NCBI GenBank assembly: GCA_010909165.1
Contig: VJWM01000173.1
Location: forward strand, 434,001-498,000
DNA length: 64,000 nucleotides
Reading direction: 5' to 3'
Origin: Anthoceros angustus
Taxonomy: Eukaryota > Plantae > Anthocerotophyta
Program-made: the position numbers and the translations under genes
Part shown: in pieces, positions 4,673-57,996 of the stretch
How the letters are laid out: each line of letters starts with the position of its first letter
Numbering within the stretch: position 1 is the stretch's first letter
The notes under the pieces: generated by a model
What the model was told of the DNA's origin: nothing
The model's database searches: none
Seen by the model: only the letters and a program-made list of their open reading frames with translations

Positions 4673-7600
4673 GGCCCGCCTCGGAATGGGTGGTCAATCC
4701 CCGTCACGGCGGTTGTGGTGCACCCAATCGGATGATCCGTGAGGCCCCTCCTCTCTCCGGAATCACATCGGGTTGGGCTCTGGCGGTCGACCGCCGTTAC
4801 CACGGCGTCATCCTCCTGGCCTCCACAGGTCCTTCGCCCGGTGGGGCCACCTATCGGCTCCCCTAAGCGTAAGTCGAAGGGGCTCCTCCTTCTTGCCGCC
4901 GGTCCTCGAGGTCTGTCTCGACTCACGAACTTGAGTCCGGCTTATTCTGAGTCCGGCCGGCTGGGTCCGACCTTGTCTGCAGGGGTCCGGACCTCGGTCG
5001 GGGTCGGACTTGGTCGGACTTGTCGGACTTGGTCCGGACTTATTCTGAGTCCGGACTTGGTCAGCCTCCTCTGGTCCGGACAAAGTCCGGACTCACGCCC
5101 ACCGGGTTTCCTCCCTCACGGGACTCCTCAGTGGCTCTCCTCGAAGTCCTCAGCTGTTCCCGATCGCCCGGTGACTCGCCGTTGGCCCTCCTTCCATGGT
5201 GAGGTGCGGGGTGCTTACCTCGATCGCATCCGCGCTCCTCGTTCTGCTCCTCGGTTGCTCCTCTCCCGCTCCGTCATCTCAAGCAGGCCACTAGGGTCCC
5301 TGTCTTTGTCCGTGGCCTTCATCTCCTTGAGCCTTCCAGGGGTCCGTCTCTGCGGCGTCGAGGCTTCTCGCCTTGAGCTCGGGCGTAATAGGCAAAGTCA
5401 CAGATCGACTTGTTGAATTGCCTCTTCCACGTGTGCGGGCACCGATACTCCCTCCGCCATAAGTGTTAGGGATTTGCTGCTTGTTGGGCCACCTCTCACC
5501 CGGTTGTGGTGGGCAGGCGTATCATGAGGCTACAAGGGCCTCGGTCACCTCCTGCATGCTGTTGCTCACTGCTCGGCTCCGTCGTTTCCCTTTCCATTGC
5601 CGGCTTACCGCCATAGCGCGGCGTTCCCTTCCGCCTTTCTCGGTGGACCAGCGGCTTCTTTTACCTTCCGGTGCTCGCGCTCCGTTCATTCGGCCTTTAG
5701 CTCGCGGCTCCTCTCCAGTGATCGGATACCTCCGTCCAGGCTCGGACTTCCTCCGGCTCCTTACAGCACAGCAGCGTCCAACTCCTTGGATAGTCGCGAT
5801 TTTCCTCCGTCTTGAGACGGGCCGGGCACTGTTTCGTGCTCGAGTCGTGGATTCTCTCGTTGAGAATCACTTGCTCAAGCGCATCTTGGGTTGTAGCTCC
5901 AGTGTGTCCTTCATCCTCCATCTGCGCCTCCCTTCTACCTCCTGCGGTACTCGGAGATCCTCTATCTCCCAGTCGGCCTTGCACGCTCCATAGCGCTTTG
6001 TCGGCCTTGAGTTAGCCTCGGTACTGTGACTCTCTCCACCGGTTCGATCACGTGCATGGTGATCCGGTCGCTCTTCACCGGCTTGACTCGCCCGCCTTTA
6101 CGGGCCTCGCCCATTTGGCTCTGGCCGGGCCGCCTCCAGTCCGAGCTCTCTGCGTGTGCGGGCCTCTTCCGCCTCCTGCGCTTCCCCTCTTCTGCAAGGT
6201 CCTCCGCTTGGGCCTCGAGCTTGCTTGCCGTGAAGAACCTTGATCTGCTGAACGCCCGGGCCTCGCGCTCACCCGGCGTTTCCCTTCCTCGATCCGAGGG
6301 ACTCCGCCTTTCCTTTGCCCCTCGGCCGCCTTCACTTGCTCTTGGGTTCCACCATCCTCCTCGGGTGGCCTCCACTTCCAGGTCTTCTCTTGTACCACAG
6401 AGACCCCAAAGCATTCCGTCCATGGCGGTGGCAGACTTCGCCGTGTTTCTTCCACGGCCAGTGAGGCCCCACAAAGTCCGTAGTGGGGCCGGCATTTCTC
6501 GATCGCCAAGGACCTCCATACCTTGATCGGGAGTAAGTCGGTGGGTTCTCGGACCTAATCGGGACCCTCGGGTCACAGTGGTGAGTCGAGTCTCACCCTC
6601 TTGGCCCTCTTGGCCTCTAACTCCTTTGTGCCCTCTTTCTCACAGGGCTCGGAGGAGGTGAGGTCGGGAGCAAGCTCTTTTGCCCCTTCACAGCCGGGGC
6701 AGGGCCTCGGGTGGGGCTGCGTGACCTCCTGCTCCTTGGGCCACGTCCCTTTCGCCCTCCTTCGCCTCTTGACCTCTTGCCACTCAGGTAGGCGGGGTAA
6801 GTCTGGCACCTTGAGGTCTTTGCGTTGGTAAGCGGCGTCTTCCGCCTCTTGGCTCCGTTGAGTTCGTCGGGGCTCGGCGGTAGTCGTGGTTGTTGGCTGT
6901 TACGTGGTGCGCACGCCCTCGGCATCGGCTCCCTCTGTCTGCTCGGAGGGCACCAAAAGGAGGGAAGAATCGCCTCCCAAACTTCACACGGTGGTGAGGG
7001 GTTCGCTCAGGGCGTGAGTCAGGAATCCTCGATCGTCCTCCTCCGAGTCGCTTGGTCTTGAAGGGCGACCCCCACCTCAGGCGCCGCTCTGCCACAGCGG
7101 GGCCTCCGGCCCTTCCGGGCGCCGCTCAAGCTCTCCCTCCTTGAGGAGCTCTGTCCCCATACATGAATCGGTATGGGGTCGGCCGATGGCGAGGCTTCTC
7201 GCTCCTTAGCTTGCGTGCCTCGAACCAGGCGAAGATAATCCTTCCCCGTCCGCTCTCTTCCCATTGGCGCATGCGAGAATACCAGGTTATCACCAAGGTG
7301 ATCCACCTTGGTGGCGAGTTCAATGGACAATGATCCGGGCTACCGCCCTTACTCGGATCCGGCGGATCGGATATCAACCATCCGTTGGTTGTCGCTGCGT
7401 TCGAGCCTCGGCGCCGTGGGGCCCTATCTTCCCTTCGCCTTAAGGGCTCGGCACCACCTTCTTCCTCCTTGGGCGGTTGTAGGCCATCCTCGGGACCTCA
7501 AGGTCCATCGCCTCGAGTCCTCCGGAGGTTCTTGGATCGGACCTCCTTGTTGATCGCCGGCATCTTGGGCAAACTCCGGACTAGAGTGCGTTGTCAAAGG

Positions 7601-8340: not shown

Positions 8341-8472
8341 TCCCAGTGCATAGCCCATGAACACTATCCTCGGTCCTCCCATATTTGGGCGATAAGTTCA
8401 TGAAGAATGCTGACAGAGGCATTAGGCATGGGGCATACAAGCTCTGAGTTTGACAGGAGTTGCACCGAGTCC

Positions 8473-8658
8473 GATTAGCATCGGAGACCGCGTTGGTTAA
8501 AGTTAGCATAAATAAACCCAGCGTGGATGCACCGCTGGTATCTAGTACAAGAGGTACAACTCTTGAGACGGAGCTATAAAAGCCACCTCTTGTAATCAAT
8601 TGTATCAATTAGTAAAGCACTATCTTTGATCAAGCGCTTCCATAAAGCACCTCAAACT
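8473..8658 (+). repeat. 5' LTR of copia A1 (186 bp)
   Basis: Direct repeat of 14741-14925 and 50610-50797; TATA box ctataaaag; ends ...cctcaaact directly before the PBS. Confidence 0.9.
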
Positions 8659-8670
8659 TGGTATCGAGCA
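8659..8670 (+). promoter_or_regulatory. PBS complementary to initiator tRNA-Met (tggtatc[a]gagca)
   Basis: One base short of the canonical TGGTATCAGAGC; the copy at 50798-50810 is exact. Confidence 0.9.
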
Positions 8671-10610
8671 TAGTTTGATTACTAAGTCCACCATGCATTA
8701 TGATGTGAATCTAGATGTTCTTCTAATATGCAACGTCTTTCCAATGCTTTTGGTATTTGTAATTTGAAGCTATTTTATACTTATTCATAGTTTCTTTATT
8801 CAACCAAACATATTTTACTAATAAAATAGTTTGGCTTCTTCTATGATTAACCTTTATATTCATTAAAGTTTCATGGCTCATTGCCACTCTCTCATTCTTC
8901 ATCTTATTCTTTCTAGCATTCTACTCATTCTTCCTTGCTACAAGACATTGTTCCTTATTGTTTTACATAAAGTTACAACATGGCAAGAAGAACAATCACA
9001 AGAGTATTCATGCTAAGAGAACTAGAAATTAGAGAGGAAAGTAGAAGAGTGCATCTCGTCGATCTACAAACATAGTCGATTTAATTCTTCTCTTTTCAAT
9101 AACTAGGGAGCAAGATAGCCTACATGCTATCCTTCTTCCTAGAAAACAATTTGGTGTCATCATCAGCGAGCTTTTAGCAATCAAAAATCAGCAAGGCCTT
9201 GGTCCACTGATGATCGATCTCGATCTTGTGGAGATATCTCGGTGATGAGAATCTCCTCCTCCTATCATTCACACAACAAAGACCAACTCACCATTTTATT
9301 CTCCAACCACACCGATGAGTAATTCTTCTCACATCATTCTAATCGATCATCGGCATCATTCCACGGTTTACGCTGAAACTCTATTATGCGATGAATGCCG
9401 CAACACCCTCGGAAACACTCAACAAGTTACTCACAAAGTACTTCATAATGCAAATTCAACTAATCGATTGTACATGTGGTTATGGCGTCACGTATGGGCA
9501 GCAATGTTTTCAAAACAAGCTCCCAACCCGACTCACTCGGCCATCACCACAACCAAATGACAACCTATCAACAAGTTCGCGAGATTTACGCTGTGCAGAT
9601 TTTCTCTCGATTAGAAGAAATCGGCATGATTTATCTCGGAGATCTCACCAGCTACTGCCTAGTGCAATCTACGCCCCTCTTCAATCCATGATATCGAGTT
9701 TGAATTCAAAAGAAATCATTTGCAGATCCTAAATGATTCGCCGCAAACTTGAATCTCCTCAATCTGCAATCTCCATATGGTGCTCCCACACGGCGACGGC
9801 CATCCACAGCGGTTCCAATCAAATCGGCCTCGTGGCGGTGCTCATTTTCGAGCCAATTCGATTCACGCTTATTCGCAACGCCATCTTTAGTCGATGCCTC
9901 CTCGGCGCCCCCTTCCAGCGCCGAATGGAGAAGAGGCCCCGATCGATGGAGGTCGATCGGGGCCCCGGGCGGTTGCGCCAGCGCCCGCTCCGCACCGTTC
10001 GCGAGCTGCCCTACCTAGCCGTTTCGAATGGTGCCCTAAAATTAATAATTGGCACCCGTTGCGAAACGGTGTCCATGAACGGCGTTTGAGCGAAGCGTTT
10101 GAAACGTTCGCCTTCAAACGGATTGGCTCTTGGGGCTGTTGGTGGGGCCCACTCTTCTTGGATCTCCTAGCATACTGTTCAACCTCGCAACTATTAGCTC
10201 GCCCCTTATAGCCTCTATCGGTTGAGTTTTCTATTCCGGCTTCCAATCAAACAAGAGCCCTTGTCGCCCCTTCCATCGGCGACATTGCTTCGGCATTATT
10301 TTTATGAGAAGCGGTGCTACTGCTCAAGAGCTATTCCATTTAGTGTCATCACCTTTGGGATCATCTTCATCGGCTCTACGAGTGTTGCGATCGGCTGCCC
10401 AGATTCGGCAACTTGCTCGTCTATGCTCCTAGTGATCGCGGCATCGTTCCGGGCTTTGATTTCATAATCATCATTGGCCTTGGATCTTTAGCAACATTTA
10501 ATTTGCTCATAGTCAAGCGTTGCTATATATATTTGAAGACTTCTTAGCTTCTTGTCATAACTTGGAGTTGGCGTTCTTCTATATATATATATCTATCTAC
10601 TTCTATCACG

Positions 10611-13600
10611 ATGGCCACCTCTCCAAATGTGCCACCCATTCCCATCATCAATTATATGAATGTGACATCGATTTTAAGGAGAAGGACCGTTTGGCACTAA
10701 GTTGAAATATGGTCCAAGCGTATGCGTTATCTTAAATACCAGATCTAATTGGCATAGTTGATGGCACCTCAAGCCCATCGGGCCCTCGCTCTCGACTCTT
10801 GGATCAAACAAGACAGCTTGCACTTCACATTCTTATTTGAGCCTTGGCGAAGTCACTACATCATCTTGATGGGGCTACTGCTGCAGGCATGGCGGTAGAT
10901 ATTTTTCAATCTACCAATGTTATGACATTAGTAATGCATGTAATTTTATTCCTTACGCATGCATAATAATGAGAGCATTGGTACTTATGTTGGGAAGTTT
11001 CGATATCTTGAATGCCTTTAGGCACTCCTTATCGAATTTGAAGCTTGTGTCCAACTCGGCCTCCCTTCCCGACTTTCAAGCATTTGTGTCCTCTCGAATG
11101 GCACATTCGAGAGGCTCATCAGATAAGGCGGCCGCACCCATTCCATCTCCAAATTGCGCTCTCCTTCAAGAGGAGGCTTCCAGTTCAACGCCGGCACTTG
11201 AGCATGGTGGTGAACGAGTTATGTTCGTTAGCAAAGGCGTCAACGTCACCTCGGCCCGGCGGCGTCCTCCTCCACGAGCGGCCCTTCACTGCGCCTTCTC
11301 GGCTCCTTCTCGCTTCCTTCTCCAAGCTGGTGGTTCCGGCCCAAGCACAGTACTGGCGGTGCGATTCGAGCCAGGGAGCTGCCGAAAGCCGGTGAGCCTC
11401 GACGCCTTCCAAGTCGCCAATATGGCCTCGACCTCCAAGCGAGCAGGCCGACATTGCCCTCACGATGCGGTAGCTTTTGAATACAAGACCTCTTGGCTAT
11501 TGGACTCGCTTCCACTATTTGCCATCACCATATGTTTTCGATTATCTCCTCCGAAGATCAACGTTTTGTTCTTCTCGGCGATGACTCGGCCTTACTATTG
11601 CGCGCAGCCTTTATTACTTTTACTCTTGAAGATGGTTCATCCTTCTTTTAAGTGATGTGCTACATGTTCCAAATGGCGAAGAATCTTATCTCCGTCACAC
11701 TTGGTGAAGGACGGTACTTTCGAGCTAGAGTTGGCGGGCGATTGCCTCCTCACAAGATCTGTTGCTCTGGTCGCGTGGTTGCTGAGGTCGTCGCATGACC
11801 TCTATGTCTTCCGCCGTACCGATCACACTTCCTCGACCGCTCCCGCCATGGCCGCTGCTCGAGAGGAGTTCGCAAAGGTGACTCCTATTATGGCATTCTC
11901 GGCTTGGACATATTAATCATGATAAGCTTTTAGAGATGTCTAGGCGGGATTTATTTAGGATAAGCTACCACACTTTTCACTCCTCCGTTGTGAACCTTGT
12001 ATATATGCTAAACAACGTAGCTTCCCCCTATCTACACGCCCGTCGGGCTACTCATTGGAGTTGGTCCATGTTGATCTTTGTGGTCTCCCGTCCCTTCACT
12101 TGGCGCGCCGCACTTTATGACTATTGATGACTATAGTCGCTATACCTTTGCTATTCCTCAAGTTGAAGAGTGATTCCTTGGCTCCTTTACTCCTTTTGTC
12201 ACTATGGGTGCAAACCGGTTGCAAGCTTGATTGCATTAGATCGACAATGCGGAGAATTAAATAACCGCAATTTAAGGACTTACATCTTGAGAGGGGATTA
12301 TCCGTGGGTTCGGTTCCTATACTTCTCGGCAGAATGGGGTTCTTGAAAAGGCCAGCAGCGATCGCCGCCATGGCCGCGCTAGCTCGGCTCCCAAACCCTT
12401 CAGGCGGCGGTTAATCTGCGGCGTATCTCCGCAGGTTCTTTCAAGTCGGTTCTGGCGGACACCCTTTGAGTCCATGGATATAAGCCTCTTATTACTCATC
12501 TTGGATTTTGGCTGCCCGCTAATATTCCTTCGCCGCGACAAGCTTTACGCTCGTGCTCAGGTATTTGTTAATGGCGAGGACCGTAAGGCTTATAAACTGG
12601 TTGACTTGGATACCCATGCTATTGTATATGCTCTGTCACTTTTGATGAGGCTCGGTTAGCATCGCTCGTTACGAGTCCATGGATTACCGGCTCCTTGGAC
12701 ACGCTTCTTCCGACCAGTGACCTTATGCGAGTTTTGACTCACCTCTTTCCGGACTCGGTCCCGCCCTTTGCTCCATCCGGCCTCTTCACCTCAAGCGGCA
12801 CCTATACCTATTTCACGCTCGAGAGGGGAAGATGACAGCCATTGTTGATCCTTATGAAACAGAGACTTTGGTGCTCTTAATTCCACAAGACCCAGAGCAG
12901 TTCTGCTCCACCTTCTCCGTAACACTTGATCCATTCAGCGGTATCCTTCGTCATCGTCAACCGAGACACCTCGGAATGAGATCCCTTTGATTTAGAGTTC
13001 AATCAAGGCTACACACCACCGCCTGCAGTCATTTCAACGCCTTGATGTTGCCCCTTGAGAGGAGATCCTCTCACTCTTCAAGAGGCATATTCGACTGATG
13101 CGCTAAGTGGAAGTTTGCTATTGATGATGAATATAATTCTCTTATCAAAAACAATACCTGGACTCTAGTAAACTTGCCGAAAGGCAGAACTACTGTCAAA
13201 TGCAAGTGGGTTCTCAAAACTAAATTCCAGGAGGTTGAACCTCGTATTCGCTATAAGGCGAGACTAGTGGCTAAGGGTTATAGTCAGAAAGAGGGAGTGG
13301 ACTATCAGGGCGATAAGGTTTATTCACCTGTAGTCAAGGCTGCTTCCGTGAGAATGCTCCTGGCTTTATGTGCCGAGCTTAATCTGGAAATTTATCAGCT
13401 TGATGTTTGCTTTTCCTTTATGGTCATCGCAAGAAGAGATCTATATGGATCAACGAAGACTATGAAGATGAGCAATACCCAAACAAGGTGTGTAAACTTA
13501 TTCGTTCTATTTACGGACTAAAGCAAAGCCCACGTTTATGGTATGAGAGAATGGACTCTTACCTCAAGAAGATAGGTTTATCCAAAGTGAAGCGACACCA

Positions 13601-14520
13601 ATATCTATGTACTCATGAGGACAGCTCCCTTGTCTGGTTGCACTATATGTTGATGACTTAGTTATTCCAGCAACAATATTGAACTAGTTAACAAGATTAA
13701 AGTGACCTTAGTAAAGAATTCGAGATGAAGGATCTCGGCAAAGTTAAATATATTCTTGGTATGCATGTACATAGAGATACCACGGTGCTATATCTCCATC
13801 AAGGAAGATATGTAGCTGGTATGTTAAAACGCTTCAATTTGGAGAATGCACGTCGCCACACGCCGTGGAGTTAAGCTTTCATCACTACATCCACAATCGA
13901 GCAGGAAAGAAAGAGATGGAAAATATTCCTTATCGTATGGGAGTTGGTACTCTCATGTTCTTGAGTAATCGACCGGACGATATCTCAAATCATAAATGCT
14001 ATTGCTCGTTCTCGGAGAATCCGAGGAAAGGATCACGGGTTGCTCTCAAGCGCATCATGCGGTACCTCAAGGGTACTCCAAATTATGGCCTCTGCTTCAA
14101 GCCTAGCGGAAAGCATCTCTTGACATGCTTTGTCGATGCGATTGGGCTTGACGACACCGAAAAAGTATCTCGATATTGCTTTCTTGGCTCCACTGTTAAT
14201 TGGTCTTGTAGAAAACAAGCTGCAATATTATCATCAGCAATCGACAAAGCACTCACTGAAGCCACGAAGAGGTGAATGGGAAAGAAAGCTATGTGAAGAT
14301 TTGGATATGAAGCGGGAAGAATAGCATGCTTAATTGTGACAATATGTCACCATTGCTGTCGCTAATCCGTCTTTCATGCGCGCAAGCATATTGAGATTCA
14401 ACACCATTATATTCGTGACGCGAGAGGAATTGTTAAGATGCGTATGTACCCACATACACAGATATCTTGACAAAATCCTTGCGAAGTTCAAACACGCTTC
14501 CACAGAGAAGGGCTTGGATT
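10611..14520 (+). pseudogene. copia gag-pol polyprotein (frameshifted)
   Basis: Gag start MATSPNVPPIP...EIWSKRM; protease SWLLDS near 11500; integrase LWHSRLGHINH and LELVHVDLCG; RT KCKWVLK, YKARLVAKGYSQKEGVDY, IYGLKQSPRLW and LYVDDL; RNase H VNWSCRKQ and KHIEIQHH. Confidence 0.92.
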
Positions 14521-14740
14521 GGTTGTTGTGACTTTTGCCTGGACCGATCACACATTTGGTGAGGCGTATCTTATCTCGAGCGTTCGATTACTTGAAGTTG
14601 TGCTATTGTAGACCGCTTCAATCTTACTTGCGACCGGTGATCGGTGAGTTGAGTTTAGTTGAAGACCGTAGTACTTATACAATACTCCGACAAATGATTA
14701 TTAGTTCTTTGATTTAGATAACCCAACTAGTCGAGAGGAG

Positions 14741-14925
14741 AGTTAGAAATGCATGCGTTGGTTATGGTTAGCTTAGCTAAACCCGTGGTCATACCCTTTG
14801 GTATCTAGTACCGAAGAGGTACAACTCTTCAGACACAGGCTATAAAAGCCCACCTCTTGTAATCAATTGTATCAATTAGTAAAGCACTATCTTTGATCAA
14901 ACGCTTCCGCAAAGCACCTCAAACT
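14741..14925 (+). repeat. 3' LTR of copia A1 (185 bp, AGTTAG...AAACT)
   Basis: Follows the polypurine tract gagaggag (14733-14740) with no spacer and is followed by the TSD ggtcc. Confidence 0.92.
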
Positions 14926-16479
14926 GGTCCACACTTTCATCTTGGTCCACATCCAAATCTTAGACCCATTCTTGCAGCAGTACAAGGAGGAAGTGGAACA
15001 AGGAGTAACGACGGAGCCATCTTTTCGTGCATGGATCCATGCGGTCGGGCGGTGGGAAGATTCGATCCATCTCACGGATGTGGCTGCGGTTATGGACGGG
15101 CCGTCCCTTTGGGCCACGGCATACAGGCACATGGCATGCAAGGAAGCCACCTTGGACGATCGCCCGCGGTGAAGTGACACGGGGCGGTGTGTTCACCGTC
15201 GTCATGGGGGCGAAGGAGGCGGACTTACTATGGCCATGTCCAAGAAATCCTGCGGGTCTCGTTTTGAAGTGCGAACCACTCATCCACGAAGGTGAAGTGG
15301 TTCGAGTGCAATCCATGCAGCGGTCTCCCGTTGATAGAAAGCGATCACGAGGTTTCCACCGCGTGTTCACTAGGCGCTATTATGCGTGTCGGGCGGATGA
15401 TGTCGATACCCCATTCATATGGCCAAATCAAGTGACCCGATGTATTCTACATGCGATGGGAGACGGAAGAGGGGTGGGCATTAGCGTGCCCACTCCCGCG
15501 GGGTGGAGGGAGGAGCGAAGGAGGCGTGATGGACAGCGTGGGCGGCTTTCGGATAGGAAGTGAAAGCGATCCATTGAAACCCTAACTAGCGAAACCCTCT
15601 ACTACCCGCATGTATGGACACGGCTTACAAGCTCAATTACGCCTTTAGGCTAATAACAAGAGATGCGAGATAGATTCGCACTATTCCCGAGATGTCGGAT
15701 GTTCGAAGTCAACAACAATTACGCTCTATGCCATCGTCTTCTTTTCCAAAAACTATCCAAAGATATGCGTAAGGTGGCGACCTCGGGTCATTTATGGCGG
15801 GCTTTGTCCGCGTCTCTCCACGACTTTAAGAAGGACCCACCAAGTTTGGCGCTCATCCACGAACCAAGCCCAAACATCGAGAGCCGGCACCAAGTCCATC
15901 CACGTGTGATTTCAAGTAAACACCTCCCTACCTCCACGCCGCGCGCTGCAGCATCCAAGGCATCTGCGTCGGACTCCGGTAGCGGCAACCGGTGGCGAGC
16001 TCCTTCTTCGCGATTCGGGCGCGGAGGCTGGCAGCCGAGCCGACCAGTGCGGATGATGCTCTCCATCTCCGTCGGAAAAGGATCCCTATTGGCGTCGCCG
16101 GTGCGGCCATTCGAGACACTTTCCACCGATGCACGCAAGTGCACAAAAGCGGTGGTGGCGGAAGGTCGGGCGGAAGCGCGAAAGTGAAGAGGTCGTCACC
16201 ACACACGGCAAGCTTGCGCGGGCCGCAGCCGCGATTTGGAACAATGGCCCCGAGGAATGGCTAACCATCGATGAATTATAGAAATGCGCGCCGCATCACG
16301 CGGCGCGCAACGACGGCCGGCGCACACAAGCGTCTGCGGGAATCAAGTTAGCGCGGTAAAGATTTTGTTCAAGCATGCACGCGCAACGACCCATTGCGAC
16401 AAGCATGTAGGTGTCTGCGAAAACAAGTGAATGGTGAGGGTGATGTATGCGGAACACATGGACATGTACCACATCGCAA

Positions 16480-21395: not shown

Positions 21396-22620
21396 GGTTA
21401 GAGATGCATTTGCGGAAGCGTCTTGCATCAAGCAGATGCTTTATTAACAATGATAGAGTTTGATTCATAGGTGGGCTTATAAAGGATGGTTACGAGGGGG
21501 TGTGTCCTTCACTAGCCTGTTAGTTAACTAACTACCCACTAGCAAAGTCTAGCTTGACTAGTCTATATTGGGTCTAGTCTAGTCGACCTTAACCAACGTG
21601 GTTTGCACTACTTCCAACTCTTCCTCTCAGACACGTTGAGTTATTTGAGATCTCCATAAAATAAAAGAAGACCACTCGTCATCGGAGTCTTGCAATGTGC
21701 TATAGTCTTCTACTCGCCTGTCCCAACTCACGGTCGGACTCCCTCGTCTTGAGGATCACCGGCTCACTCACGGAGTAGAACACGGTTGTGGCCGAGGCGG
21801 GAAGCAGGCAATTTGTCAACTTCAAGTAATGGAATATAAGATAAAAGCCTCACCATATGAGCGACTTGTCTAGCATCATAAAGCTACTACAGTCTTCTAA
21901 TCCAAGCCCTTCTTTGTGGAAGTAGTGTTTAAACTTGGGCAAGGATTTTGTCAACACATGTGTTGTGTTATCGTCTGTTGGTACATACCGTACCTTTACT
22001 ATTCCCCTTTATGTGGTATCACGAATATAATGATGTTGAATCTTTACGTGTTTCGTGTGTGCATAGAATACGGGGTCAACAACTAAAGCAATTGTTGACA
22101 TGTTACCATGGTTAAGTATTGTTGGCCCTTCCTGCAGCATACCCAAATCCTTGCATAGCTTTCCTTCCCACTCAGCCTCCTCAGTGGCTTTTGTGAGTAC
22201 CATATTCTGATTTTGTTGATGAAAGTGAAACGACTACTTGTTTCCTACAAGTCCAATTGACAGAAAAGCCTGGCAAGAAAGCAATATGCTGAGATACTTT
22301 TCGTGGTGTATGCATCTGAAGCCCAATTTGCATCCACGTAGCATGAAACCAGAAGGCGCTTTTGACCACTAGGTTTGTAGCAGAGGCCAAAATTTGGTGT
22401 ACCCTTAAGCTACCGCATAATGCATTTGAGAGAAACCCAGTGATCTCATCCTTGGTTCTTTGAGAACTGAGCAACAACATTCATGGTGTTTGAGATATCA
22501 GGTCTTATCTAATTACTCAAGAACATAAAAGAGTACCAACTGCCATGCGATAGGTTACAAACTCCATATTCTTTTTGTCCTTTTCAAACTGAGGACAGGA
22601 GGCAGATGAGAGCTTAACAC
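21396..22620 (-). mobile_element. Diverged copia family A relative (A3): RT end, RNase H, 3' UTR and a 138 bp 3' LTR (21533-21396)
   Basis: VNWTCRKQVVVSLSSTKSEY and HTKHVKIQHHYIRD; 3' UTR and LTR align with A1 (aagggcttggatt, attacttgaagttg, agcccacct...taaagca...acgcttccgcaaa). Confidence 0.85.
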
Positions 22621-23376: not shown

Positions 23377-26300
23377 TTAACGCTGGGGAGGCCTCTCCTC
23401 CCCAACAAAGAAGCTATGCACCAGTCCATCATTGTCTGTCCACCAACTCAGACCTGGCTGCTTCCATGCCTTGATTTTTGTTCTCCTTGCCTGCAAATCC
23501 TGTGCCCGATCCCACATCTGGGCGCCAAAGTATATGTTTGACATTAGCACATATGCGGCAGCATCTTTCCTGTCCAGCTTCAATGCTTCATTGAAAGCAT
23601 GGCATCCCACCTCCACATTATTCCACTTTTGACAAGCACCCAATAGAGTGTGCCAAATTGCAGCATTAGGTAGTACTGGCATTCTCCTTACTAAATCTAG
23701 CGCCTCATCCAGTTGTCCTGCACGCCCCAGGAGATCCACCATGCACGTGTAGTGATTCTCTGTGGGAGTGAGGCTGTGGAGTCTACCCATAGCCTCAAAG
23801 TACTCCCGTCCCTCGTTCACTAGACCCACATGACTGCAAGCTGTGAGTACACTGAGAAATGTGATGCTGTCAGGCTGCACGCCATACTCTTTCATACTCT
23901 CAACAAGGTGAAAGACTGTGTCACTGTCACCTTGACAGGTGTATCCCGCAATGAGTGCATTCCAGACAACAACATCTTGTTCAGGCAATGAATCAAACAC
24001 CTGTTGTGCATCAACCATGCTCCCGGACTTTCCATACATGTTTATCAAACTGCCAGCTACAAACAAATCGGCGTGAAGCCCTTGCTCTACAATCTGTGCA
24101 TGTAGCTGCGTTCCCAGATACAAGGCTGCCACATTTGCACATGCCTGTAGGAGGCACACAAATGTCATGGAATCAAGTGCACCCACGCTTCCTTCTTGCA
24201 TAACACTGTACAGACGGAGCGCTTCTTGTCCCATATCCTGCTGGGAATACCCTGCTATCATGGCACTCCACATTACCACATCTTTTCGACCAACTCCATC
24301 AAACACTCTCCGCCCGTCCTCCAAGCCGCCACACTTTGCATACATGTTCACCAAACTACTGGCTACACACATGTCAGCTTCAAGTCCTTGCTCTCTGATC
24401 AGTGTGTGCAGATGCTTTCCCTTCTCTAAAGCGGGGGTGCCCAAATTTGCACATGCCTGCAGGAGGCACACAAATGTCACGCAGTCAGGTGCAACTATGC
24501 TTTCCTCTTGCATTGCACTGTAGACGAAGGCTTCTGCCCCATGCCCTGCTGGGAATATCCTGCTATCATGGCATTCCATGTCACCACATCTTTTGACCAA
24601 GTCCATCAAACACTCTGAGCATCTTCCAAGCTGCCACACTTTGCATACATATTTACCAAACTGTTGGCTAAACAAATCAGCTTCATGTCCTCTTCTCTAA
24701 AGCGGGGGTGCCCAAATTTGCACATGCCTGCAGGAGGCACACAAATGTCACGCAGTCAGGTGCAACTATGCTTTCCTCTTGCATTGCACGGTAGGCATCA
24801 AGGGCTTCCTGCCCCATGCCTTTCTGGGAATATCCTGCTATCATGGCATTCCATGTCACCACATTCTTTTGACTCAGTCCATCAAATACTCTTTGAGCAT
24901 CTTCCACACTCCCACACTTTGAATACATATTTATCAAACTGTTGGCCACAAACAAATCACCTTCATGTCCTCTTCCTCTAATCTGAGTATGAAGCTGCTT
25001 CCCCGTCTCCAAAGCTGGGGTTCCTAGACTTGCACATGCCTGCAGGAGGCAAGCGAATGTCACAGAGTCGGGTGCAGCCATGCCATCTTCTTGCATAGCA
25101 TGATAGAGATAAAGGGCCTCTTGCCCCATGCCCTGCTGGGAATACCCTCCTATCATGGCATTCCATGTCACCACATCTTTCTGACCAAGTCCTTCGAACA
25201 CTCTCTGCGCATCTTCTAAGCTGCCACACTTGGCATACATGTTCACCAAACTGTTGGCTACAAACACATCAGCTTGATGTCCTTGTTCTCTGAATCTGCA
25301 TGAAGCTGCTTCCTTCTCCAAAGCCAGGTGCCCACACACACATGCCTGCAGGAGGCACAAATGTCACTGAATCAGGTACAGCCTTCTTCTTGCATAGCAC
25401 AGAAGAAAGGGCTTCACCCATGCCCTGCTGGGAATACCCTGCTATCATGGCATTCCACGTCACCACATCTTTTGACAAGTCCGTCAAACACACTCTGAGC
25501 ATCTTCCTGCCACACTTTGCATACATGTTCACCAAACTGTTGGCTACAAACATCAGCCTGTCCTCGTTCTCTAATCTTTTATGAAGCTGCTCCTCTCCAA
25601 AGCTGGGGTGCCCACACTTGCACATGCCTGCAGGAGGCAAACAAATGTCACAGAATCAGGTACATGCCTCTTCTTGCATGTGTACTGTAGAGGGCTTCCT
25701 GCCCCATGCCCTGCTGGGAATATCCTGCTATCATGGCATTCCACACCACATCCTTTTGAAAGTCCATCAAACACTGAGCATCTTCCAAGCTGCCACACTT
25801 TGCATACATGTTCACCAAACTGTTGGCTACAAACATCATCTTCCTGTCCTTGTTCTCTAATTTGCGCATGAAGCTGCTTCCTTCTCCAAAGCTGGGTGCC
25901 CACACTTGCACATGCCTGCAGGCACACAAATGTCACAGAATCAGGTACAGCACCCCTTCTTCTTGCATAGCACTGTAGATGAAGGGCTTGCCCCATGCCC
26001 TGCTGGGAATACCCTCCTATCATGGCATTCCATGTCACCACATCTTTCTGACCAAGTCCTTCGAACACTCTCTGCGCATCTTCTAAGCTGCCACACTTGG
26101 CATACATGTTCACCAAACTGTTGGCTACAAACACATCCCATTGATGTCCTTGTTCTCTGATCTGCAAATGAAGCTGCCTCCCCGTCTCCACAGCCAGGGT
26201 GCCCACATTTCCACATGCCTGTAAGAGGCACACAAAGGTCACTGAATCAAGTACAGCTTTAACTTCTTCTTGCATAACACTGTAAAGATGGAGGGCCTGC

Positions 26301-28546
26301 TGCCCCATACCCTGCTGAGAATACCCTGCTATCATGGCATTCCACATCACCACATCTTTTTTATCAACTCCGTCGAACACACTTTGAGCGTCCTTCAAGC
26401 TGCCACACTTTGCATACATGTTCACCAAACTGCTGGCTACAAACACATCGGCGTCCTGTCCTCGTTCTCTAATCTGCATATGAAGCTGCTTCCCCATCTC
26501 TAAGCCTGGGGTGCCCACACTCGCACATGCCTGCAGGAGACAAACAAATGTCACAGAATCAGGTACAGCCACGCCCTCTTCTTGCATGGTACTGTAGAGT
26601 CGAAGAGCTTCCTGCCCCATACCCTGCTGCGAATACCCTGCTATCATGGCATTCCACATCACTGCATCCTTTTGATGCAGTCCGTCAAAAATCCTACGAG
26701 CGTCTTCCAAGCTGCCACACTTTGCATACATGTTCATTAAACTGTTGGCTACAAACACATCTTCCTGCCCTTGCTCTGTGATTTGCGCATGAAGATGCCT
26801 CCCCTTCTCCAACGCCGGGGTGCCCACACTTGCACATGCCTGGAGCAGGCACACAAAAGTCACAGAATCAGGTACAGCGACCCCTTCTGTTTGCATAGCA
26901 CTGTAGAGCCGAAGTGCTTCTTGCCCCATGCCCTGCTGGGAATACCCTGCTATCATGGCATTCCACGTCACTGCATTTTTTTGACCAAGTATGTCAAATA
27001 TCCTCTGTGCATCTTCCAAGCTGCCACACTTTGCGTACATGTTCATCAAACTGCTGGCTACATACACATCAGCTTGCAGTCCTTGTTCTCCAATCTGCAC
27101 GTGAAGCTGCCTGCCCTGCTCCAATGCCTGGCTGCCCAGGCTTGCACATGCCTGCAGGAGGCACACAAATGTCACGGAATTGGGCACTGCCTTGCCTTCC
27201 TCTTGCATAGCACTGTAGAGATGAAGGGCTTCCTGACCCCTGCCCTCCTGGGAATAGCCTGCTATCATGGCATTCCACGTCACCACATCTTTTTGACCAA
27301 ATCCATCAAAGACTCTCTGAGCGTCTTCCAAGCTCCCACACTTCGCATACATGTTCACCAAACTGCTGGCAACAAACACATGAACATCATGTCCTCGTCC
27401 TCTAATCTGCGCATGAACCTGCCTCCCCTTCTCCAAAGCCGAGGTGCCCAAACTTGCACATGCCTGCAGGACAGACGCAAATGTCACAGAATTGGGTATA
27501 GCCTTGCCTTCTTCTAGCATAGCACCGTACAGGTGAAGGGCTTGGTCCCCCATGCCCTGCTGGGAATACCCTGCTATCATGGCATTCCACGTCACCACAT
27601 CTCTTTCACCAAGTCCGTCAAAAACCCTCTGAGCATCTTCCAAGCTGCCACACTTGGCATACATGTCCACCAAGCAGCTAGAGACAAACAAATTCGGCTC
27701 CACACCACTGGCCAGCACATCCGCGTGCACCTGCTGCCCGGACTTCAAGTCTGACCCCCTTGCACAAGCCTGAAGAGCTGCCACAAACACATGGCCATCC
27801 GGCGTCACACCGCACGTTCGCATCCGATGATACAATTCCATGGCCTGCCTGTCCTGTCCCTGTTTAACATGCGCAGAAATTATCCCAGACCACGTAAAGG
27901 CATCGGGTTCCACGACGGCGTCAAACACGTCCATCGCCTCTTGCAACCTGCCATGAGAAGCATACATTCTAAGGATGTGGAAGCCCAGGAAAGTGTCCGA
28001 ATGGTACCCCTTTCGCACCGTGGCAGCATGAACGCGGGTTCCCAAAGCAAGATCCTTCCTGGCTACACACTTCTTCAAAACAGCATAAACGAGGGATTTG
28101 GAAACACAACGGTCTGTCTGCAACAAAGCCTCCAAGACCTCGACAGCATCACGGATTTGGCCGTCCTGAATGAGCTTCCTCACGGTTTCAGCTGTTACTC
28201 CCCTACCGTCACCTCCAAGCCTGCGAGGGTGAGGATAGTCGTGGAGGTTCCTGTCGGAGACACAACGACCCATCCCCACATCCACATCCACAGGAGCAAG
28301 CGGTGGCTTGTACAAGTTGTTTAACCAGAGGACCTCTTGAGACTGCCTGTGCCGCCGGAGGTCAGGCGGCCGGAGGCTCTTGTCAGTTTGCCACAAATCC
28401 TCCTGGCGACGGCCCGCGCTGGAAGCCAACCATCCTCTGGGACGGGCTCCCTGTCTTGCAAAGGTGCTGCACTTCCCGACCTGGTTGTGCGCCCTTCCTA
28501 CCATCCCCGGAACTCCACCAGCCATGCTCCAAAGCGAACGCGCCAA
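23377..28546 (-). CDS. PLS-class pentatricopeptide repeat protein with E1/E2 and a PG/WW box but no DYW deaminase (organellar RNA-editing specificity factor); frameshifted between about 24500 and 26000
   Basis: About 14 P-L-S triplets with a ~312 nt period (DVVTWNAMIAGYSQQG / DSVTFVCLLQACAS / DVFVANSLVNMYAKCG); P2-L2-S2 (TFLSVLTACSHVGLV, HYTCMVDLLGRAG); E domain (IWHTLLGAC, YVLMSNIY); ends KQPGLSWWTDNDGLVHSFFVGEERPPQR*. The N-terminus looks like a transit peptide. No introns. Confidence 0.95.
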
Positions 28547-50609: not shown

Positions 50610-53600
50610 AGTTAGAAGTACAGACCGCGTTGGTTATGGTTACCTTAGCTAAACCCCATGGTCATACCTTTGGTGTCTAGCACCAAGAGGTACAACTCTT
50701 CGCATACGTGCTATAAAAGCCCACCTCTTGTAATCAATTGTATCAATTAGTAAAGCACTAAACTTTGATCAAACGCTTCCGCAAAGCACCTCAAACTTGG
50801 TATCAGAGCATAGTTTGATTACTAAGTCCATCATGCATTATGATGTGAATCTAGATGTTCTTCTAATATGCAACGTCTTTCCAATGCTTTTGGTATTTGT
50901 AATTTGAAGCTATTTTATACTTATTCATAGTTTCTTTCACATTCAACCAAACATATTTTACTAATAAAATAGTTTGGCTTCTTCTATGATTAACCTTTAT
51001 ATTCATTAAAGTTTCATGGCTCATTGCCACTCTCTCATTCTTCATCTTATTCTTTCTAGCATTCTACTCACTCTTCCTTGTACAAGACATTGTTCCTTAT
51101 TGTTTTACATAAAGTTACAACATGGCAAGAAGAAACAATCACAAGAGTATTCATGCTAAGAGAACTAGAGAATTAGAGAGGGAAAGTAGAAGAATTGTGC
51201 ACTCTCGTCGATCCTACAAACATAGTCGATTTAATTCTTCTCTTTTCAATAACCTAGGGAGCAAGATAGCCTACATGCTATCCTGCTTCTTTCTAGAAAA
51301 CAATTTGGTATCATCATCAGCAACAGGAGCTTTTAGCAATCAAAAATCAGCAAGGCCTTGGTCCACTAGTGATGATCCTGATTTGCTTCGATGTTGTGGA
51401 GATATCTCGAGTGATGAGAATCAGAAGTCCTCCTCCTATCATTCACACAACAAGGAGACCAACTCACCATTTTATTCTCCTACCACACCGATAGAGTAAT
51501 TCTTACGTCATCATTCTAATCGATCGGTCGGCATCATTCCACGGTTTACGCTAAGAAACTCTATTATCTTGCTGATGAATGAATGACAACACCCTCGGCA
51601 AACACTCAACAAGTTACTCACAAAGTACTTCATAATGCAAATTCAACTAATCACGATTGTACATGGTTACGGCGTGCGTATGGGCAGCAATGTTTTCAAA
51701 CAAGCTCCAACTTGACGACTCACTCGGCCATCTCCTACAGCCTGCAAATCATGAAACAACCTATCAACAAGTTCAAGCTGAGATTTCTGCTGCTGCAGAT
51801 TTTCTTTCTCGATTAGAAGAAATCGGCATGATTTATCTCAGGAGATCTCACCAGCTCAGCGCCTAGTGCAAATGCCCCCATATCTGCCATCGTCTCTTCA
51901 GATCAGCTGATATCAGGGGGTCCAACCACTGAAATTCAAAAGAAATCATTTGCAGATCCTAACAGCCATTCTTCTGCAAATCTCCGTCTTGAATCTCCTC
52001 AATTCTGCTGCAATCTTACTCCATATGGTGCACCCATCACCGGCGATCAGATCCCATCCAGCATGGCGGTTCCAATCTCAGAATCGACTCAGATCGAGGC
52101 CGGTACTCTTCATGTTTTCCAGGCTAATTCAGTTACTGCTTACTGTTGCAACGCTTGCAATCTTTGGGCAGTAGAGGCGCCCTTCTCCAGCGCCCCTGCT
52201 GCATCTGGCGCGACTGGAAATGGTGAAGAGGGCCCCCAGATCGATGGAGATTCAGATCAGGGGGCCCCGGGCGGTTGCGCGCGCGTGTCCCCCGCGCGCG
52301 CCCGCTCAACCTCGGCACCCGTTCGCGAACGGTGCCCTAAAAACTCTTTTTTGGCACCCGTTCGCGACGGTGCCCTAAAATATTATTTTGGCACCCGTTG
52401 CGGTGCCAGAACAGGGCGTTTGAGCGAAACGTTTGAACGTTTCGCCTTCAAGATTGGCTCTTGGGGTTGTTGGTGGGGCCCACCTGGCATCTTCTGGATC
52501 TCCTAGCATACTGCTCAGCCCTCGCTTGCAACTATTCGAGCTCGTCGCCCCTTATAGACCTCTATCGGTTGATTTTTCAATTTATTCGCTTGACAATCAA
52601 ACAAGAGCCCTTGTCGCCGCCTTCCATCGGCGACATTGCTTCGGCGTTATTTTATGAGCAGCGGTTACTCGCTCAAGAGCTATTCCATTTGGAGTGTCAT
52701 CATCTTTGGGATCATCTTCGTGACTCTACGAGTCGGTGTAGTCGGTACCCAAGATTCGACATCTTGCTACATCTATGCTCCTAGTGACCGCGGCATCGTT
52801 CACTGGGTTGTTTGATTTTTCATAACCATCATTGGCCTTCGGGATCTTTAGCAAAGTAACATTTAATTTGCTCATAGTCAAGCGTTGCTATATATATTTG
52901 AAGACTTCTTAGCTTCTTGTCATAACTTGGGGTTGGCGGTTCCAATCTCGAATCGATCGGATCGAGGCGGTACTCTTCATGTTTTCGAATTCGATTCTTC
53001 TTATTTGCGCTTGCAATCTTTGGGCGATGGGCGCCTTCTCCAGCGCCCTGCATCAGCGCGACTGGAAATGGTGAAGAGGGCCCCGGATCGATGGAGATTG
53101 ATCGAGGCCGGTGTTCTTGTGCGCGTGTCCCAGCCGCTCAACCTCGGCACCCGTTCGCGAACGGTGCCCTAAAACTCTTTTTTGGCACCCGTTCGCGGTG
53201 CCCTAAAATTTTTGGCACCCGTTGCGGTGCCGTTTGTAACGGGCGCGTTTGAGCGAAACGTTTGAAGCGTTTACGCCTTCAAGAACGAGATTGGCTCTTG
53301 GGGTTGTTGGTGGGGCCCACCTGGCATCTTCTTCTGGATCTCCTAGCATACTGCTCAGCCCTCGCTTTGAACTATTCGAGCTCGTCGCCCCTTATAGACC
53401 TCTATCGGTTGATTTTCGGCTATTCGGCTTGACAATCAAACAAGAGCCCTTGTCGCCGCCTTCCATCGGCGACATTGCTCTCGGCGTTATTTTATGAGCA
53501 AGTGGTGCTCTTTTCAAGAGCTATTCCATTTGGAGTGTCATCATCTTTGGGATCATCTTCATCGACTCTACGAGTCGGTGTAGTCGGTGCCAAGATTCGG

Positions 53601-56600
53601 CATCTTGCTCATCTATGCTCCTAGTGACATCGCCGTTCAGGTTGTTTGATTTTTCATAACCATCATTGGCCGGGATCTTTAGCAAAGTAACATTTTGTTG
53701 CTCATAGTCAAGCGTTGCTATATATATTTGAAGACTTCTTAGCTTCTTGTCATAACTTGGAGTTGGCGGTTCCAATCTCGAATCGATCGGATCGAGGCGG
53801 TACTCTTCATGTTTTCGAATTCGATTCTTCTTATTTGCGCTTGCAATCTTTGGGCGATGGGCGCCTTCTCCAGCGCCCTGCATCAGCGCGACTGGAAATG
53901 GTGAAGAGGGCCCCGGATCGATGGAGATTGATCGAGGCCGGTGTTCTTGTGCGCGTGTCCCAGCCGCTCAACCTCGGCACCCGTTCGCGAACGGTGCCCT
54001 AAAACTCTTTTTTGGCACCCGTTCGCGGTGCCCTAAAATTTTTGGCACCCGTTGCGGTGCCGTTTGTAACGGGCGCGTTTGAGCGAAACGTTTGAAGCGT
54101 TTACGCCTTCAAGAACGAGATTGGCTCTTGGGGTTGTTGGTGGGGCCCACCTGGCATCTTCTTCTGGATCTCCTAGCATACCTGTTCAGCCCTCGCTTGC
54201 AACTATTCGGAGCTCGTCGCCCCCTTATAGACCTCTATCGGTTGATTTTCGGCTATTCGGCTTGAGCAATCAAACAAGAGCCCTTGTCGCCGCGCCTTCC
54301 ATCGGCGACATTGCTCTCGGCGTTATTTTATGAGCAAGTGGTGCTCTTTCAAGAGCTATTCCATTTGGAGTGTCATCATCTTTGGGATCATCTTCATCGA
54401 CTCTACGAGTCGGTGTAGTCGGTGCCAAGATTCGGCATCTTGCTCATCTATGCTCCTAGTGACATCGCCGTTCAGGTTGTTTGACTTTTCATAATCATCC
54501 TTGGCCTTCGGGATCTTTAGCAAAGTAACATTTAATTTGCTCATAGTCAAGCGTTGCTATATATATCTGAAGACTTCTTAGCTTCTTGTCATAACTTGGA
54601 GTTGGCAGTTCTTCTATATATATATATCTATCTACTTCTATCACGATGGCCACCTCTCCAAATGTGCCACCCATTCCCATCATCAATTATATGAATGTGA
54701 CATCCGATTTTAAGAAGGACCGTTTCGATGGCACTAAGTTGAAATATGGTCCAAACGTATGCTCTCTTAAATACCAGATCTAATTGGCATAGTTGATGGA
54801 ACTGTCCTCAAGCCGCCCTCGACTCTCGACTCTTGGATCAAACAAGGCAGGCTTGCACTTCACATTCTTATTTTGGCCTTGGCGAAGTCACTACATCATC
54901 TTGATGGGGCTACTCTGCTGCGAGGCATGGCGGCATAGTAGATGGTTCTTCTTTTACCAATGATGTGATGTGCTACATGTTCCAAATGGCGAAGAATCTT
55001 ATCTCCGTCCGACACTTGGTGAAGGACGGTACTTTCGAGCTAGAGTTGCGATTGTCTCCTCACAGATCTATTGCTCCTAGTCGGCGTGGTTGCTAGAGGT
55101 CGTCCGGCGGCATGACCTCTATGTCTTCTCCGCGTGCAGTGATCACGACTTCCTCGACCCGGCTCCGCCATGGCCACTGCGGTCGAGGAGGAGTTCTAAA
55201 GGTGACTCCTATTATGGCATTCTCGGCTTGGACATATTAATCATGATAAGCTTTTAGAGATGTCTAGGCGTGATTTATTTAGGGATAAGCTACCACACTT
55301 TTCCAGACTCCTCCGTTATGTGAACCTTGTATATATGCTAAACAACGTAGCTTCCCTATCCTACTCTACACGGTCTACTCATTTAGTTGGTCCATGTTGA
55401 TCTTTGTGGTCCTCCCGGTCCCTTCACTTGGCGCATCGCACTTTATGACTCTTGTTGATGACTATAGTCGCTATACCTTTGCTATTCCGCTCAAGTTGAA
55501 GAGTGATTCCTTGACTCCTTTACTCCTTTTGTCACTATGGTGCAAACCGGTTTGCAAGCTTGCATTAGATCGACAATGCGGAGAATTAAATAAAAGCAAT
55601 TTAAGGACTTACATCTTGAGAGGGATTATCCGTCGGTTCGGTTCCCTATACTTCTCTGAGAATGGGGTTCTTGAAAAGGCCAGCGATCGCTCGCCATGGC
55701 CCGCGCCATGCTAGCCTCGACTCCCAAACCCTTACGGGCGGCGGTTAATCTGCGGCGTATCTGCAGGGGTTCTTTCCAAGTCGGTTCTGGCGGACACCCT
55801 TTGAGTCTGGCATGGATATAAGCCTCTTATTACTCATCTTGGATTTTTGTGCCCGCCTATGCTAATATTCCTTCTCGCGACAAGCTTTACCTTTCGCTTT
55901 CATGGTAGTATTTGTTGGCTATGGCGAGGACCGTAAGGCTTATAAAGCGGTTGACTTGGATACCCATGCTATTGTATATGCTCTTGTCACCTTTGATGAG
56001 GCTCGGTTAGCATCTGCTCGTTACGAGTCCATGGATTACCGGCTCCTTGACGACACGCTTCTTGACCCGGTGACCTTATGCAGGTTTTGACTCGACCCTC
56101 TGTTTCGGACTCGGTCCGCAACCTGCTCCATCCCTGGCCTCTTCACCTCAAGCGGCACCTATACCTATGTTCACCTTTCGAGAGGGGAAGATGAGCAGCC
56201 ATTGTTGATCCTTATGAAAGCGAGGCGACTTTGGTGCTCTTAATTCACAAGACCCGAGGCAGTTCTGCTCCACCTTCTCCGTAACACTTGATCCGGCGAA
56301 GGTATCCTTGCGTCACGTCAAGAGACACCTGGAATGAGATCCCTTTGATTTAGAGTTCAATCAAGTGGCTACACCACCTGCTGCGGGTCATTTCAACGCC
56401 TTTGTTGCCCTTGAGAGGAGATCCTCTCACTCTTCAAGAGCATATTCGCGACTGATGCGGCTAAGTGGAAGTTTGCTATTGATGATGAATATAATTCTCT
56501 TATCAAAAACAATACGGACTCTAGTAAACTTGCAAAAGCGAACTCTTTGTCAAATGCAAGTGGGTTCTCAAAACTAAATTCCGGAGGTTGAACCTCGTAT

Positions 56601-56884
56601 TCGCTATAAAGGCGAGACTAGTGGCTAAGGGTTATAGTCGGAAGAGGGTGGACTATCGTAGGCGATAAGGTATATTCACACCGTAGTCAAGGAGTAGAAT
56701 GCTCCACGGCTTTATGTGCCGAGCTTAATCTGGAAATTTATCAGCTTGTACTGCTTTCCTTTATGGTCATCTGCAAGAAGAGATCTATATGGATCAACCA
56801 GAAGACTATGAGGATGAGCAATACCCAAACAAGGTGTGTAAACTTATTCGTTCTATTTACGGACTAAAGCAAAGCCCACGTTTA
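50610..56884 (+). mobile_element. copia family A copy 2: 5' LTR 50610-50797, PBS 50798-50810, triplicated leader segment, gag/protease deletion, cut in RT by copia B
   Basis: Colinear with 8473-13540; gag ATG at 54646; about 0.75 kb missing near 54940 (matches about 10890-11630 of A1); homology ends at gcccacgttta. Confidence 0.93.
52064..54605. repeat. Three tandem copies of an ~830 bp unit of the copia A leader
   Basis: Units start tggcggttccaatctc near 52064, 52934 and 53764; ORFs 52885..53172 and 53715..54002 differ by one residue. Confidence 0.93.
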
Positions 56885-57996
56885 TGATGAAAATCATACA
56901 CTAGGCTCTTGAGAAAGAGATTCTTATATGACAATTGATTTAATACAAAATACAAAGCCTATTTATAGGCAAGGTGGTTAGGAGGTTAGGTGGTTACAAC
57001 CATAAGTAGTTGTAACCATCAAGTAGTTATAACTACCTAACCTAACTACCTAGAGCAACTAACTAGTAACTACTTAATGCCCTAGGTAGATAAAGATGAT
57101 TAAGTTAGGTACCCTAGTGAATAGTGCCTAACCTAATCTATTTCATTACTCCCACTCACTATGAGCGTGGGTGAGAGAACTACCATTAAAATGAGGCCTA
57201 AAATGTCAATAGACTCCCACTAAATAACAAGCTATAAGCCTAAGAAAAGTAATCAAAAACAATACGGACTCTAGTAAACTTGCTTGGCGAACTCGCATCA
57301 CGCAAGTGGGTTCTCAAAACTAAATTCCGGAGGTTGAACCTCGTATTCGCTATAAAGTGAGACTAGTGGCTAAGGGTTATAGTCGAAAGAGGGTGGACTA
57401 TCGTCAGGCGATAAGGTATATATTCACCGTAGTCAAGGCTTGTGAGAATGCTCCACGGCTTTATGTGCCGAGCTTAACTGAAATTTATCGACTTGTCTTG
57501 CTTTCCTTTATGGTCATCTGCAAGAAGAGATCTATATGGATCAACAAGACTATGAGGATGAGCAATACCCAAACAAGGTGTAAACTTATTCGTTCTATTT
57601 ACGGACTAAAGCAAAGCCACGTTTATGATGAAAATCATACACTAGGCTCTTGAGAAAGAGATTCTTATATGACAATTGATTTAATACAAAATACAAAGCC
57701 TATTTATAGGCAAGGTGGTTAGGAGGTTAGGTGGTTACAACCATAAGTAGTTGTAACCATCAAGTGATTATAACTACCTAACCACTAACTACCTAGAGCA
57801 ACTAACTAGTAACTACTTAATGCCCTAGGTAGATAAAGATGATTAAGTTAGGTACCCTAGTGAATAGTGCCTAACCCTAATCTATTTCATTACTCCCACT
57901 CACTATGAGCGTGGGTGAGAGAACTACCATTAAAATGAGGCCTAAAATGTCAATAGACTCCCACTAAATAACAAGCTATAAGCCTAAGAAAAGTAA
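56502..57996. repeat. ~745 bp tandem duplication spanning the copia A2 / copia B junction
   Basis: RT piece, LTR-B and PPT appear at 56502-57252 and again at 57252-57996. Confidence 0.92.

Follow-up and report, generated by a model that had tools for sequence, protein, structure and literature searches.

Ty1/copia retrotransposons usually, though not obligatorily, carry long terminal repeats (LTRs) whose first letters are TG and whose last are CA, and the locus described here raises the question of whether a plant Copia family can instead be bounded by AGTT at its 5′ end and AACT at its 3′ end. The locus lies within a stretch of 64,000 nucleotides from Anthoceros angustus (assembly GCA_010909165.1, contig VJWM01000173.1, positions 434,001 to 498,000 of the forward strand), referred to here as the window, and all coordinates are positions within it. 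The element in question, designated A1 (8473-14925), is a decayed Ty1/copia element, an old and dead copy, and two relatives in the window, A2 and the more distant A3, are best explained as separate insertions of the same short-LTR Ty1/copia family. An earlier note on this DNA, made from the letters alone, had proposed a copia family with AGTT...AACT ends; this is still the best reading, with the CT-3′ end well supported and the AG-5′ end less secure. Drawing on four LTRs from three independent insertions, the integrated ends of the family are probably 5′-AGTT...AACT-3′ and not TGTT...AACA.

Identity of the element and its 3′ terminus

A1 is assigned to Ty1/copia on the basis of its RVT_2 reverse transcriptase (RT) and the integrase remnant that lies upstream of it. 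Pfam RVT_2 matches within the RT remnant (E=1.1e-19 and 9.2e-9) fall at 13174-13658, and by blastx the domains run in the order integrase, RT and RNase H, collinear with full-length Copia polyproteins. The LTRs are in direct orientation, with a primer-binding site (PBS) following the 5′ copy and a polypurine tract (PPT) preceding the 3′ copy, and the whole is flanked by a 5-bp target-site duplication (TSD). The PBS of A1 and A2 is of a type that we take to be that of the initiator tRNA-Met (iMet), as in plant Copia elements. Domain order, LTR/PBS/PPT layout and TSD length are thus all those of Ty1/copia, and only the usual TG...CA termini are missing. Neither gag nor protease is recognisable in A1, and the catalytic core of the integrase was not detectable by blastx between the N-terminal remnant and the RT, being too decayed.

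The 3′ terminus of the LTR, ...AACT, is solid. The ending CAAACT is common to three LTRs (A1 5′, A1 3′ and A2 5′), and in both 5′ LTRs it abuts the PBS with zero spacer in the junction CAAACT/TGGTATC. The claim that both 5′ LTRs end AAACT flush with the PBS is therefore borne out, the junctions lying at 8658/8659 in A1 (one base past 8657) and at 50797/50798 in A2. Similarity of the A1 3′ LTR to the 5′ LTRs ceases right at CAAACT. Further evidence comes from Logan contigs of three public sequencing runs (X1 to X3; shares 0.08-0.11) that were aligned to 9101-15100. Nine X1 contigs match up to 14925 and then enter unlike sequence, which has a mutual agreement of 0.59, lacks a PBS, and corresponds neither to the window flank nor to the PBS. 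Such a pattern is expected where members of one LTR family sit at separate sites, and because the contigs diverge exactly after 14925, AACT can be regarded as the end of the integrated LTR and not as a spacer that follows an internal CA.

The 5′ terminus and the competing boundaries

The AG at the 5′ terminus is likely, though less secure than the 3′ end, and it is the best reading of the A2 host junction, two PPT junctions, a 3′ end that is its mirror image, and the position of the A1 TSD. AGTT is found at three of the four LTR starts (A1 3′, A2 5′ and A3 3′). In A1 the 3′ LTR (14741-14925) reads AGTTAG directly after GAGAGGAG and ends CAAACT, just as the earlier note had it, and in A3 the corresponding junction is GAGAGGAAG/AGTTGG. 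A1 and A3 are collinear from the end of RNase H through the conserved GAGAGGAAG, after which A3 continues with AGTTGGAAG at 21619. The A3 3′ LTR had been said to start with AGTT at 21533; the letters hold, yet that position is an internal AGTTAG, and the true start, AGTTGG after GAGAGGAAG, is at 21619. As the PPT/AGTT junction is common to LTRs that are only about 60-66% identical (A3 against A1 and A2), it dates from before their split and has come through transposition. The A3 LTR was also recovered at 21619-21397 (E=4e-43) by an nhmmer profile that was built from the four LTRs and used to search the window only.

The LTR opens with AGTTAG, and its final six bases read AGTTTG as reverse complement, so that five of six positions match; Copia LTRs usually have a short inverted repeat of this kind, but here its outermost pair has gone from T/A to A/T. 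In terms of outermost letters, A1 reads AG (GA in its 5′ LTR)...CT, A2 reads AG...CT and A3 reads AG...CC.

A2 provides a view of the junction with host DNA. It starts with AGTT as previously reported (AGTTAGAAG at 50610), the sequence upstream is non-homologous host DNA, and the junction reads T/AGTTAG. Here a first alternative has to be considered, namely that the family is T-first (TG...CT or some other type) and that the leading A reflects decay or a misplaced boundary, the true start of A2 being, for example, the TGTT that lies four bases further out (TGTT/AGTTAG). All copies are old and mutated, and T is invariant at the LTR start in the plant genomes surveyed so far (10.1101/137141; PMC9804982), both of which would favour such a view. 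However, no TGTT precedes AGTT in the A1 or A3 3′ LTRs, nor is it found at the A1 5′ LTR, and for this reason the TGTT of A2 is read as host DNA. Moreover, three independent insertions share the A, the distant A3 among them, so that it cannot stem from decay after insertion, and the 3′ end is a T that mirrors the 5′ A; a T-first family is therefore considered improbable.

The position of the TSD favours the AGTT boundary as well. The duplication reported earlier, agtcc/ggtcc with four of five matches, was confirmed, and it is the sole good match among neighbouring boundaries: shifting the boundaries by 1-4 bases (8469-8476 were checked) yields only 0-2/5 matches. The chance of a match of at least 4/5 is about 1.6% at a fixed position and about 0.1 when shifted boundaries are allowed. 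A second line of support offered for the boundaries, that removal of the element restores the frame of a host transposase, did not hold. Just upstream of the junction the joined frame meets two stops within three codons, the frame would be kept no less well if an excision of equal length were moved by a few bases, and the identification of the host flank as a transposase is unsupported, with no Pfam match in any open reading frame (ORF) of the flanks.

The TSD also bears on a second alternative, in which TTAG, two bases further in, is the true LTR start and the ends are TT...CT, the AG of the 3′ LTRs being derived from the polypurine primer and the AG or GA of the 5′ LTRs being host DNA. AG does extend the purine run in both 3′ LTRs, and the 5′ LTRs of A1 and A2 differ at exactly those two bases (GA versus AG). 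With this boundary, however, the A1 TSD drops to 0/5, the host bases at A2 would have to be AG by chance (about 1/16), and the mirror symmetry with ...AACT is lost, which makes TT...CT ends quite improbable. It is very improbable that the odd terminal letters and broken frames are consensus errors of the assembly, as might be supposed from an A1 PBS that is short by one base, for the termini are repeated across three separate copies, identity to the stretch reaches at least 99% in 143 of 382 X1 contigs, and mirror symmetry between the two ends is not to be expected of errors.

Several observations nevertheless weigh against AGTT...AACT as the integrated ends. There is only one complete element, A1, and it is old, with LTRs that are 86% alike and all ORFs broken. 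TSD evidence comes from this element only, as A2 has no 3′ end and so permits no TSD check. The A1 5′ LTR, as the earlier note had conceded, starts GATTAG, two transitions away from AG, which leaves A2 as the sole host junction that shows AG. Because the PPT is a purine run, the cut between PPT and U3 could be placed differently by as many as two bases. Finally, at the 3′ end, the A3 LTR reads CTCTAACC at the aligned position, that is ...AACC.

Relatives, further copies and the surrounding window

The features discussed here are compiled in Table 1. Several side observations concern the relationship between A1 and A2. The two LTRs of A1 are unevenly diverged, with 69% identity over the first 75 nt (8473-8547 versus 14741-14815) and 90% over the remainder, which reflects either uneven decay or partial conversion of one LTR. 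The A1 3′ LTR is nearer to the A2 5′ LTR than to its own partner. Over about 270 bp of the leader just 3′ of the PBS (8666-8937 versus 50806-51080), A1 and A2 share 99% identity; elsewhere the LTRs of the two elements are 83-89% alike and the remaining element about 82-88%. This suggests recent gene conversion across 42 kb, strong constraint, or an assembly effect. Between the leader and the integrase remnant, A1 contains a GC-rich region (9700-11700) in which neither gag nor protease can be recognised and which exceeds the normal length of gag-protease by about 1.7 kb. At 10900-12300 there is deep coverage by contigs from a second organism (runs X2 and X3), so that this insert is repetitive in its own right.

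Table 1. Coordinates of the A1, A2 and A3 elements and of a neighbouring gene in the 64,000-nucleotide window
Feature	Position	Strand	Description
Left TSD copy	8468..8472	+	AGTCC; 4/5 match to right copy
A1 5′ LTR	8473..8658	+	186 bp; first letters GATTAG, last CAAACT
A1 PBS	8659..8669	+	TGGTATC-GAGC; flush with LTR end; one base fewer than A2 PBS
A1 integrase N-terminal remnant	11889..12085	+	gag_pre-integrs/rve start; blastx against full-length Copia polyproteins P0099 and P0098
A1 reverse transcriptase remnant	13106..13866	+	Copia-type, several frames; Pfam RVT_2 and blastx
A1 RNase H remnant	13869..14423	+	blastx, collinear with polyprotein C-termini; representatives search
A1 PPT	14733..14740	+	GAGAGGAG; directly 5′ of 3′ LTR; A3 counterpart is GAGAGGAAG
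A1 3′ LTR	14741..14925	+	185 bp; first AGTTAG, last CAAACT; internal TATA-like CTATAAAAG
Right TSD copy	14926..14930	+	GGTCC; flush with A1 3′ LTR end
A3 3′ LTR	21396..21619	-	224 bp, diverged; first AGTTGG, last CTCTAACC; alignment with A1 and nhmmer
A3 PPT	21620..21628	-	GAGAGGAAG; alignment with A1
A3 RT/RNase H fragment	21817..22552	-	71% identity to A1 element positions 5459-6128
PPR gene	23377-28546	-	PLS-class with E motif; ORF/Pfam analysis
A2 5′ LTR	50610..50797	+	188 bp; first AGTTAG, last CAAACT; flanked by host ...TGTGTT
A2 PBS	50798..50809	+	TGGTATCAGAGC; directly after 5′ LTR
A2 internal region	50810..57627	+	internal tandem duplications; ends inside RT at 57627 at foreign insertion

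No 3′ LTR of A2 was found in the window. The internal region of A2 has been rearranged: a unit of about 830 bp is present three times in tandem (52064-54611), and a tandem duplication of about 742 bp (56876-58003) repeats the junction of the A2 RT with the foreign insertion. The element that cuts the RT after ...CACGTTTATG (56886/56887 and 57627/57628) lies on the minus strand; its end is ...TGATTTTCAT, and it is therefore not of the AG...CT type. A second Copia RT is located on the minus strand at 60023-61335 and has 45-55% amino-acid identity to A1; this RT and the element nested in A2 may belong to the same element, the 5′ part of which would then lie outside the window.

A3 is 5′-truncated and adjoins a gene for a pentatricopeptide repeat (PPR) protein. 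Many copies of a 312-nt (104-aa) unit make up the PPR gene, which is divided among three ORFs of 432, 225 and 991 aa; the gene may be a pseudogene or may have been frameshifted by assembly errors. The database matches of the PPR ORF are proteins of conifers, ferns, lycophytes and mosses, none above 48% identity, which points to a non-flowering land plant that is not represented in the protein database.

Further copies that could test the AG...CT ends were sought within and beyond the window. A search for additional LTR pairs in the 64-kb window returned that of A1 as the sole pair. In a metagenome scan a conserved LTR 22-mer gave zero matches, and a piece of the RT matched only distant copias (41-76% identity over short stretches). 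The RNase H piece had no match in the length range covered by a protein word-index search, and its best matches in an exhaustive search of representatives were at 35-43% identity. Loci from these distant RNase H relatives, which lie in an NCBI assembly record, probably of a green alga, and in metagenome or Logan contigs, yielded no clean LTR pairs, and the one LTR start that was seen reads TGTTGG; as a test of LTR ends these loci were rejected as too distant. An exact protein look-up of the conserved leader ORF returned no record.

Proposed integration of AG...CT ends and comparison with known LTR termini

Ends of the form AGTT...AACT suggest a simple route of integration. Initiator tRNA-Met would prime the minus strand from a PBS whose first base adjoins ...AACT, and the plus strand would be primed from a purine tract whose last base adjoins AGTT; with zero spacer to both the PBS and the PPT, the termini of the full-length cDNA would coincide exactly with those of the LTRs. 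Since the ends are mirror images, each strand would terminate in ...AACT-3′, and the integrase would join both 3′ hydroxyls, one per strand, to a target staggered by 5 bp. The integrase of this lineage would then accept or prefer T-3′ ends, and 3′ trimming of the cDNA would not be needed. In yeast Ty1, blunt unprocessed cDNA ends are integrated and the LTR ends are TG...CA. The family described here is like Ty1 in that PBS and PPT are flush with the LTRs, with no bases to trim, and unlike it in the end letters themselves. The earlier note had concluded from the zero spacers that blunt cDNA is integrated without 3′ processing, as in Ty1; the spacers are indeed zero, and the lack of processing is something we infer from them.

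The first base of U3 would pass to the next generation via the 3′ LTR and the last base of U5 via the 5′ LTR, following the logic of the model proposed for TARE1 (PMC3701649). Because the end bases are inherited via different LTRs, mirror-image ends would need two changes, each tolerated or followed by the integrase; these would have arisen separately and been spread by transposition. It can be put forward only tentatively that a whole Copia lineage in Anthoceros angustus has AG...CT as its working terminus, recognised by its integrase, which would be a palindromic, host-lineage-wide departure from TG...CA with the supposedly invariant first T replaced.

Non-canonical LTR ends have been surveyed in plants. 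Ou & Jiang (10.1101/137141) described seven non-TGCA motifs, all of which are T-first and mostly found in short-LTR Copia elements (272 bp), and in the lotus study no non-canonical type of Copia is as common as TG..CT, while T is again said to hold the first position without exception (PMC9804982). Mean LTR lengths are 272-316 bp for non-TGCA Copia versus 911-972 bp for canonical Copia (10.1101/137141; PMC9804982), and other plant examples include rice Tos17 (TG..GA) and tomato TARE1 (TA..CA) (10.1101/137141; PMC9804982; PMC3701649). The family described here resembles non-TGCA plant Copia in being Ty1/copia with very short LTRs (185 bp) and a 5-bp TSD, and resembles the lotus TGCT group in its CT-3′ end. 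Its LTRs, at 185-188 bp in A1 and A2 and 224 bp in A3, are short like those of published non-TGCA Copia (about 200-350 bp). It is unlike them in its first base, which is A at three of four LTR starts and G at the fourth where the published families have T, and in the mirror symmetry of its ends (AGTT/AACT), whereas the ends of the published families are mostly no longer inverted repeats.

The earlier statement that all known non-canonical ends start with T proved to be incomplete, as A-first ends have been described from Rosaceae Copia (AA...CA; PMC5659011) and from Drosophila errantiviruses (AGT...AnT; PMC5408687). The Rosaceae AACA Copia and terminal-repeat retrotransposon in miniature (TRIM) families are likewise plant Copia-like with A-first LTRs, their boundaries having been set by TSDs; they keep CA-3′ and are non-palindromic, unlike the present case in which both ends are changed and complementary (PMC5659011). 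In the errantiviruses (gypsy, ZAM and Idefix groups) AGT...AnT ends are a lineage trait; the end letters are nearly the same as here (AGT...ACT), and in both cases integrase would be matched to mirror-image ends other than TG/CA (PMC5408687). Errantiviruses, however, are insect Ty3/gypsy elements (Metaviridae) with env, a 4-bp TSD and specific targets (PMC5408687), while A1 has an RVT_2 RT, integrase before RT, an iMet PBS and a 5-bp TSD and is thus not a member. In view of the Copia-type RT, the iMet PBS and the 5-bp TSD, the likeness of the ends would be convergent. Troyka offers another lineage with conserved termini other than TG/CA, although it is an animal superfamily with CG...CG ends and a 3-bp TSD (PMC12440569).

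In the literature library that was searched, no description of AG...CT Copia elements was found. The A1 family belongs to Copia and combines end letters in a new way, and it is neither a new kind of element nor a new mechanism. The finding is less exceptional in that CT-3′ ends and A-first ends in Copia, along with AGT...AnT errantiviruses, have already been published.

As a single decayed locus A1 has no functional consequence of its own. If the proposed ends are correct, the family would be a counter-example to two plant-wide surveys which hold that the first LTR base is always T, and the pairing of Copia integrase with its LTR ends could shift as a unit, as it has in insect errantiviruses. 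Families of this kind would escape LTRharvest or LTR_retriever runs confined to TGCA or the seven motifs on the list, and their absence would lower the counts of intact elements and the assembly indices for the Anthoceros angustus genome. Should the ends be lineage-wide, a sizeable share of the LTR elements of this genome would be un-annotated.

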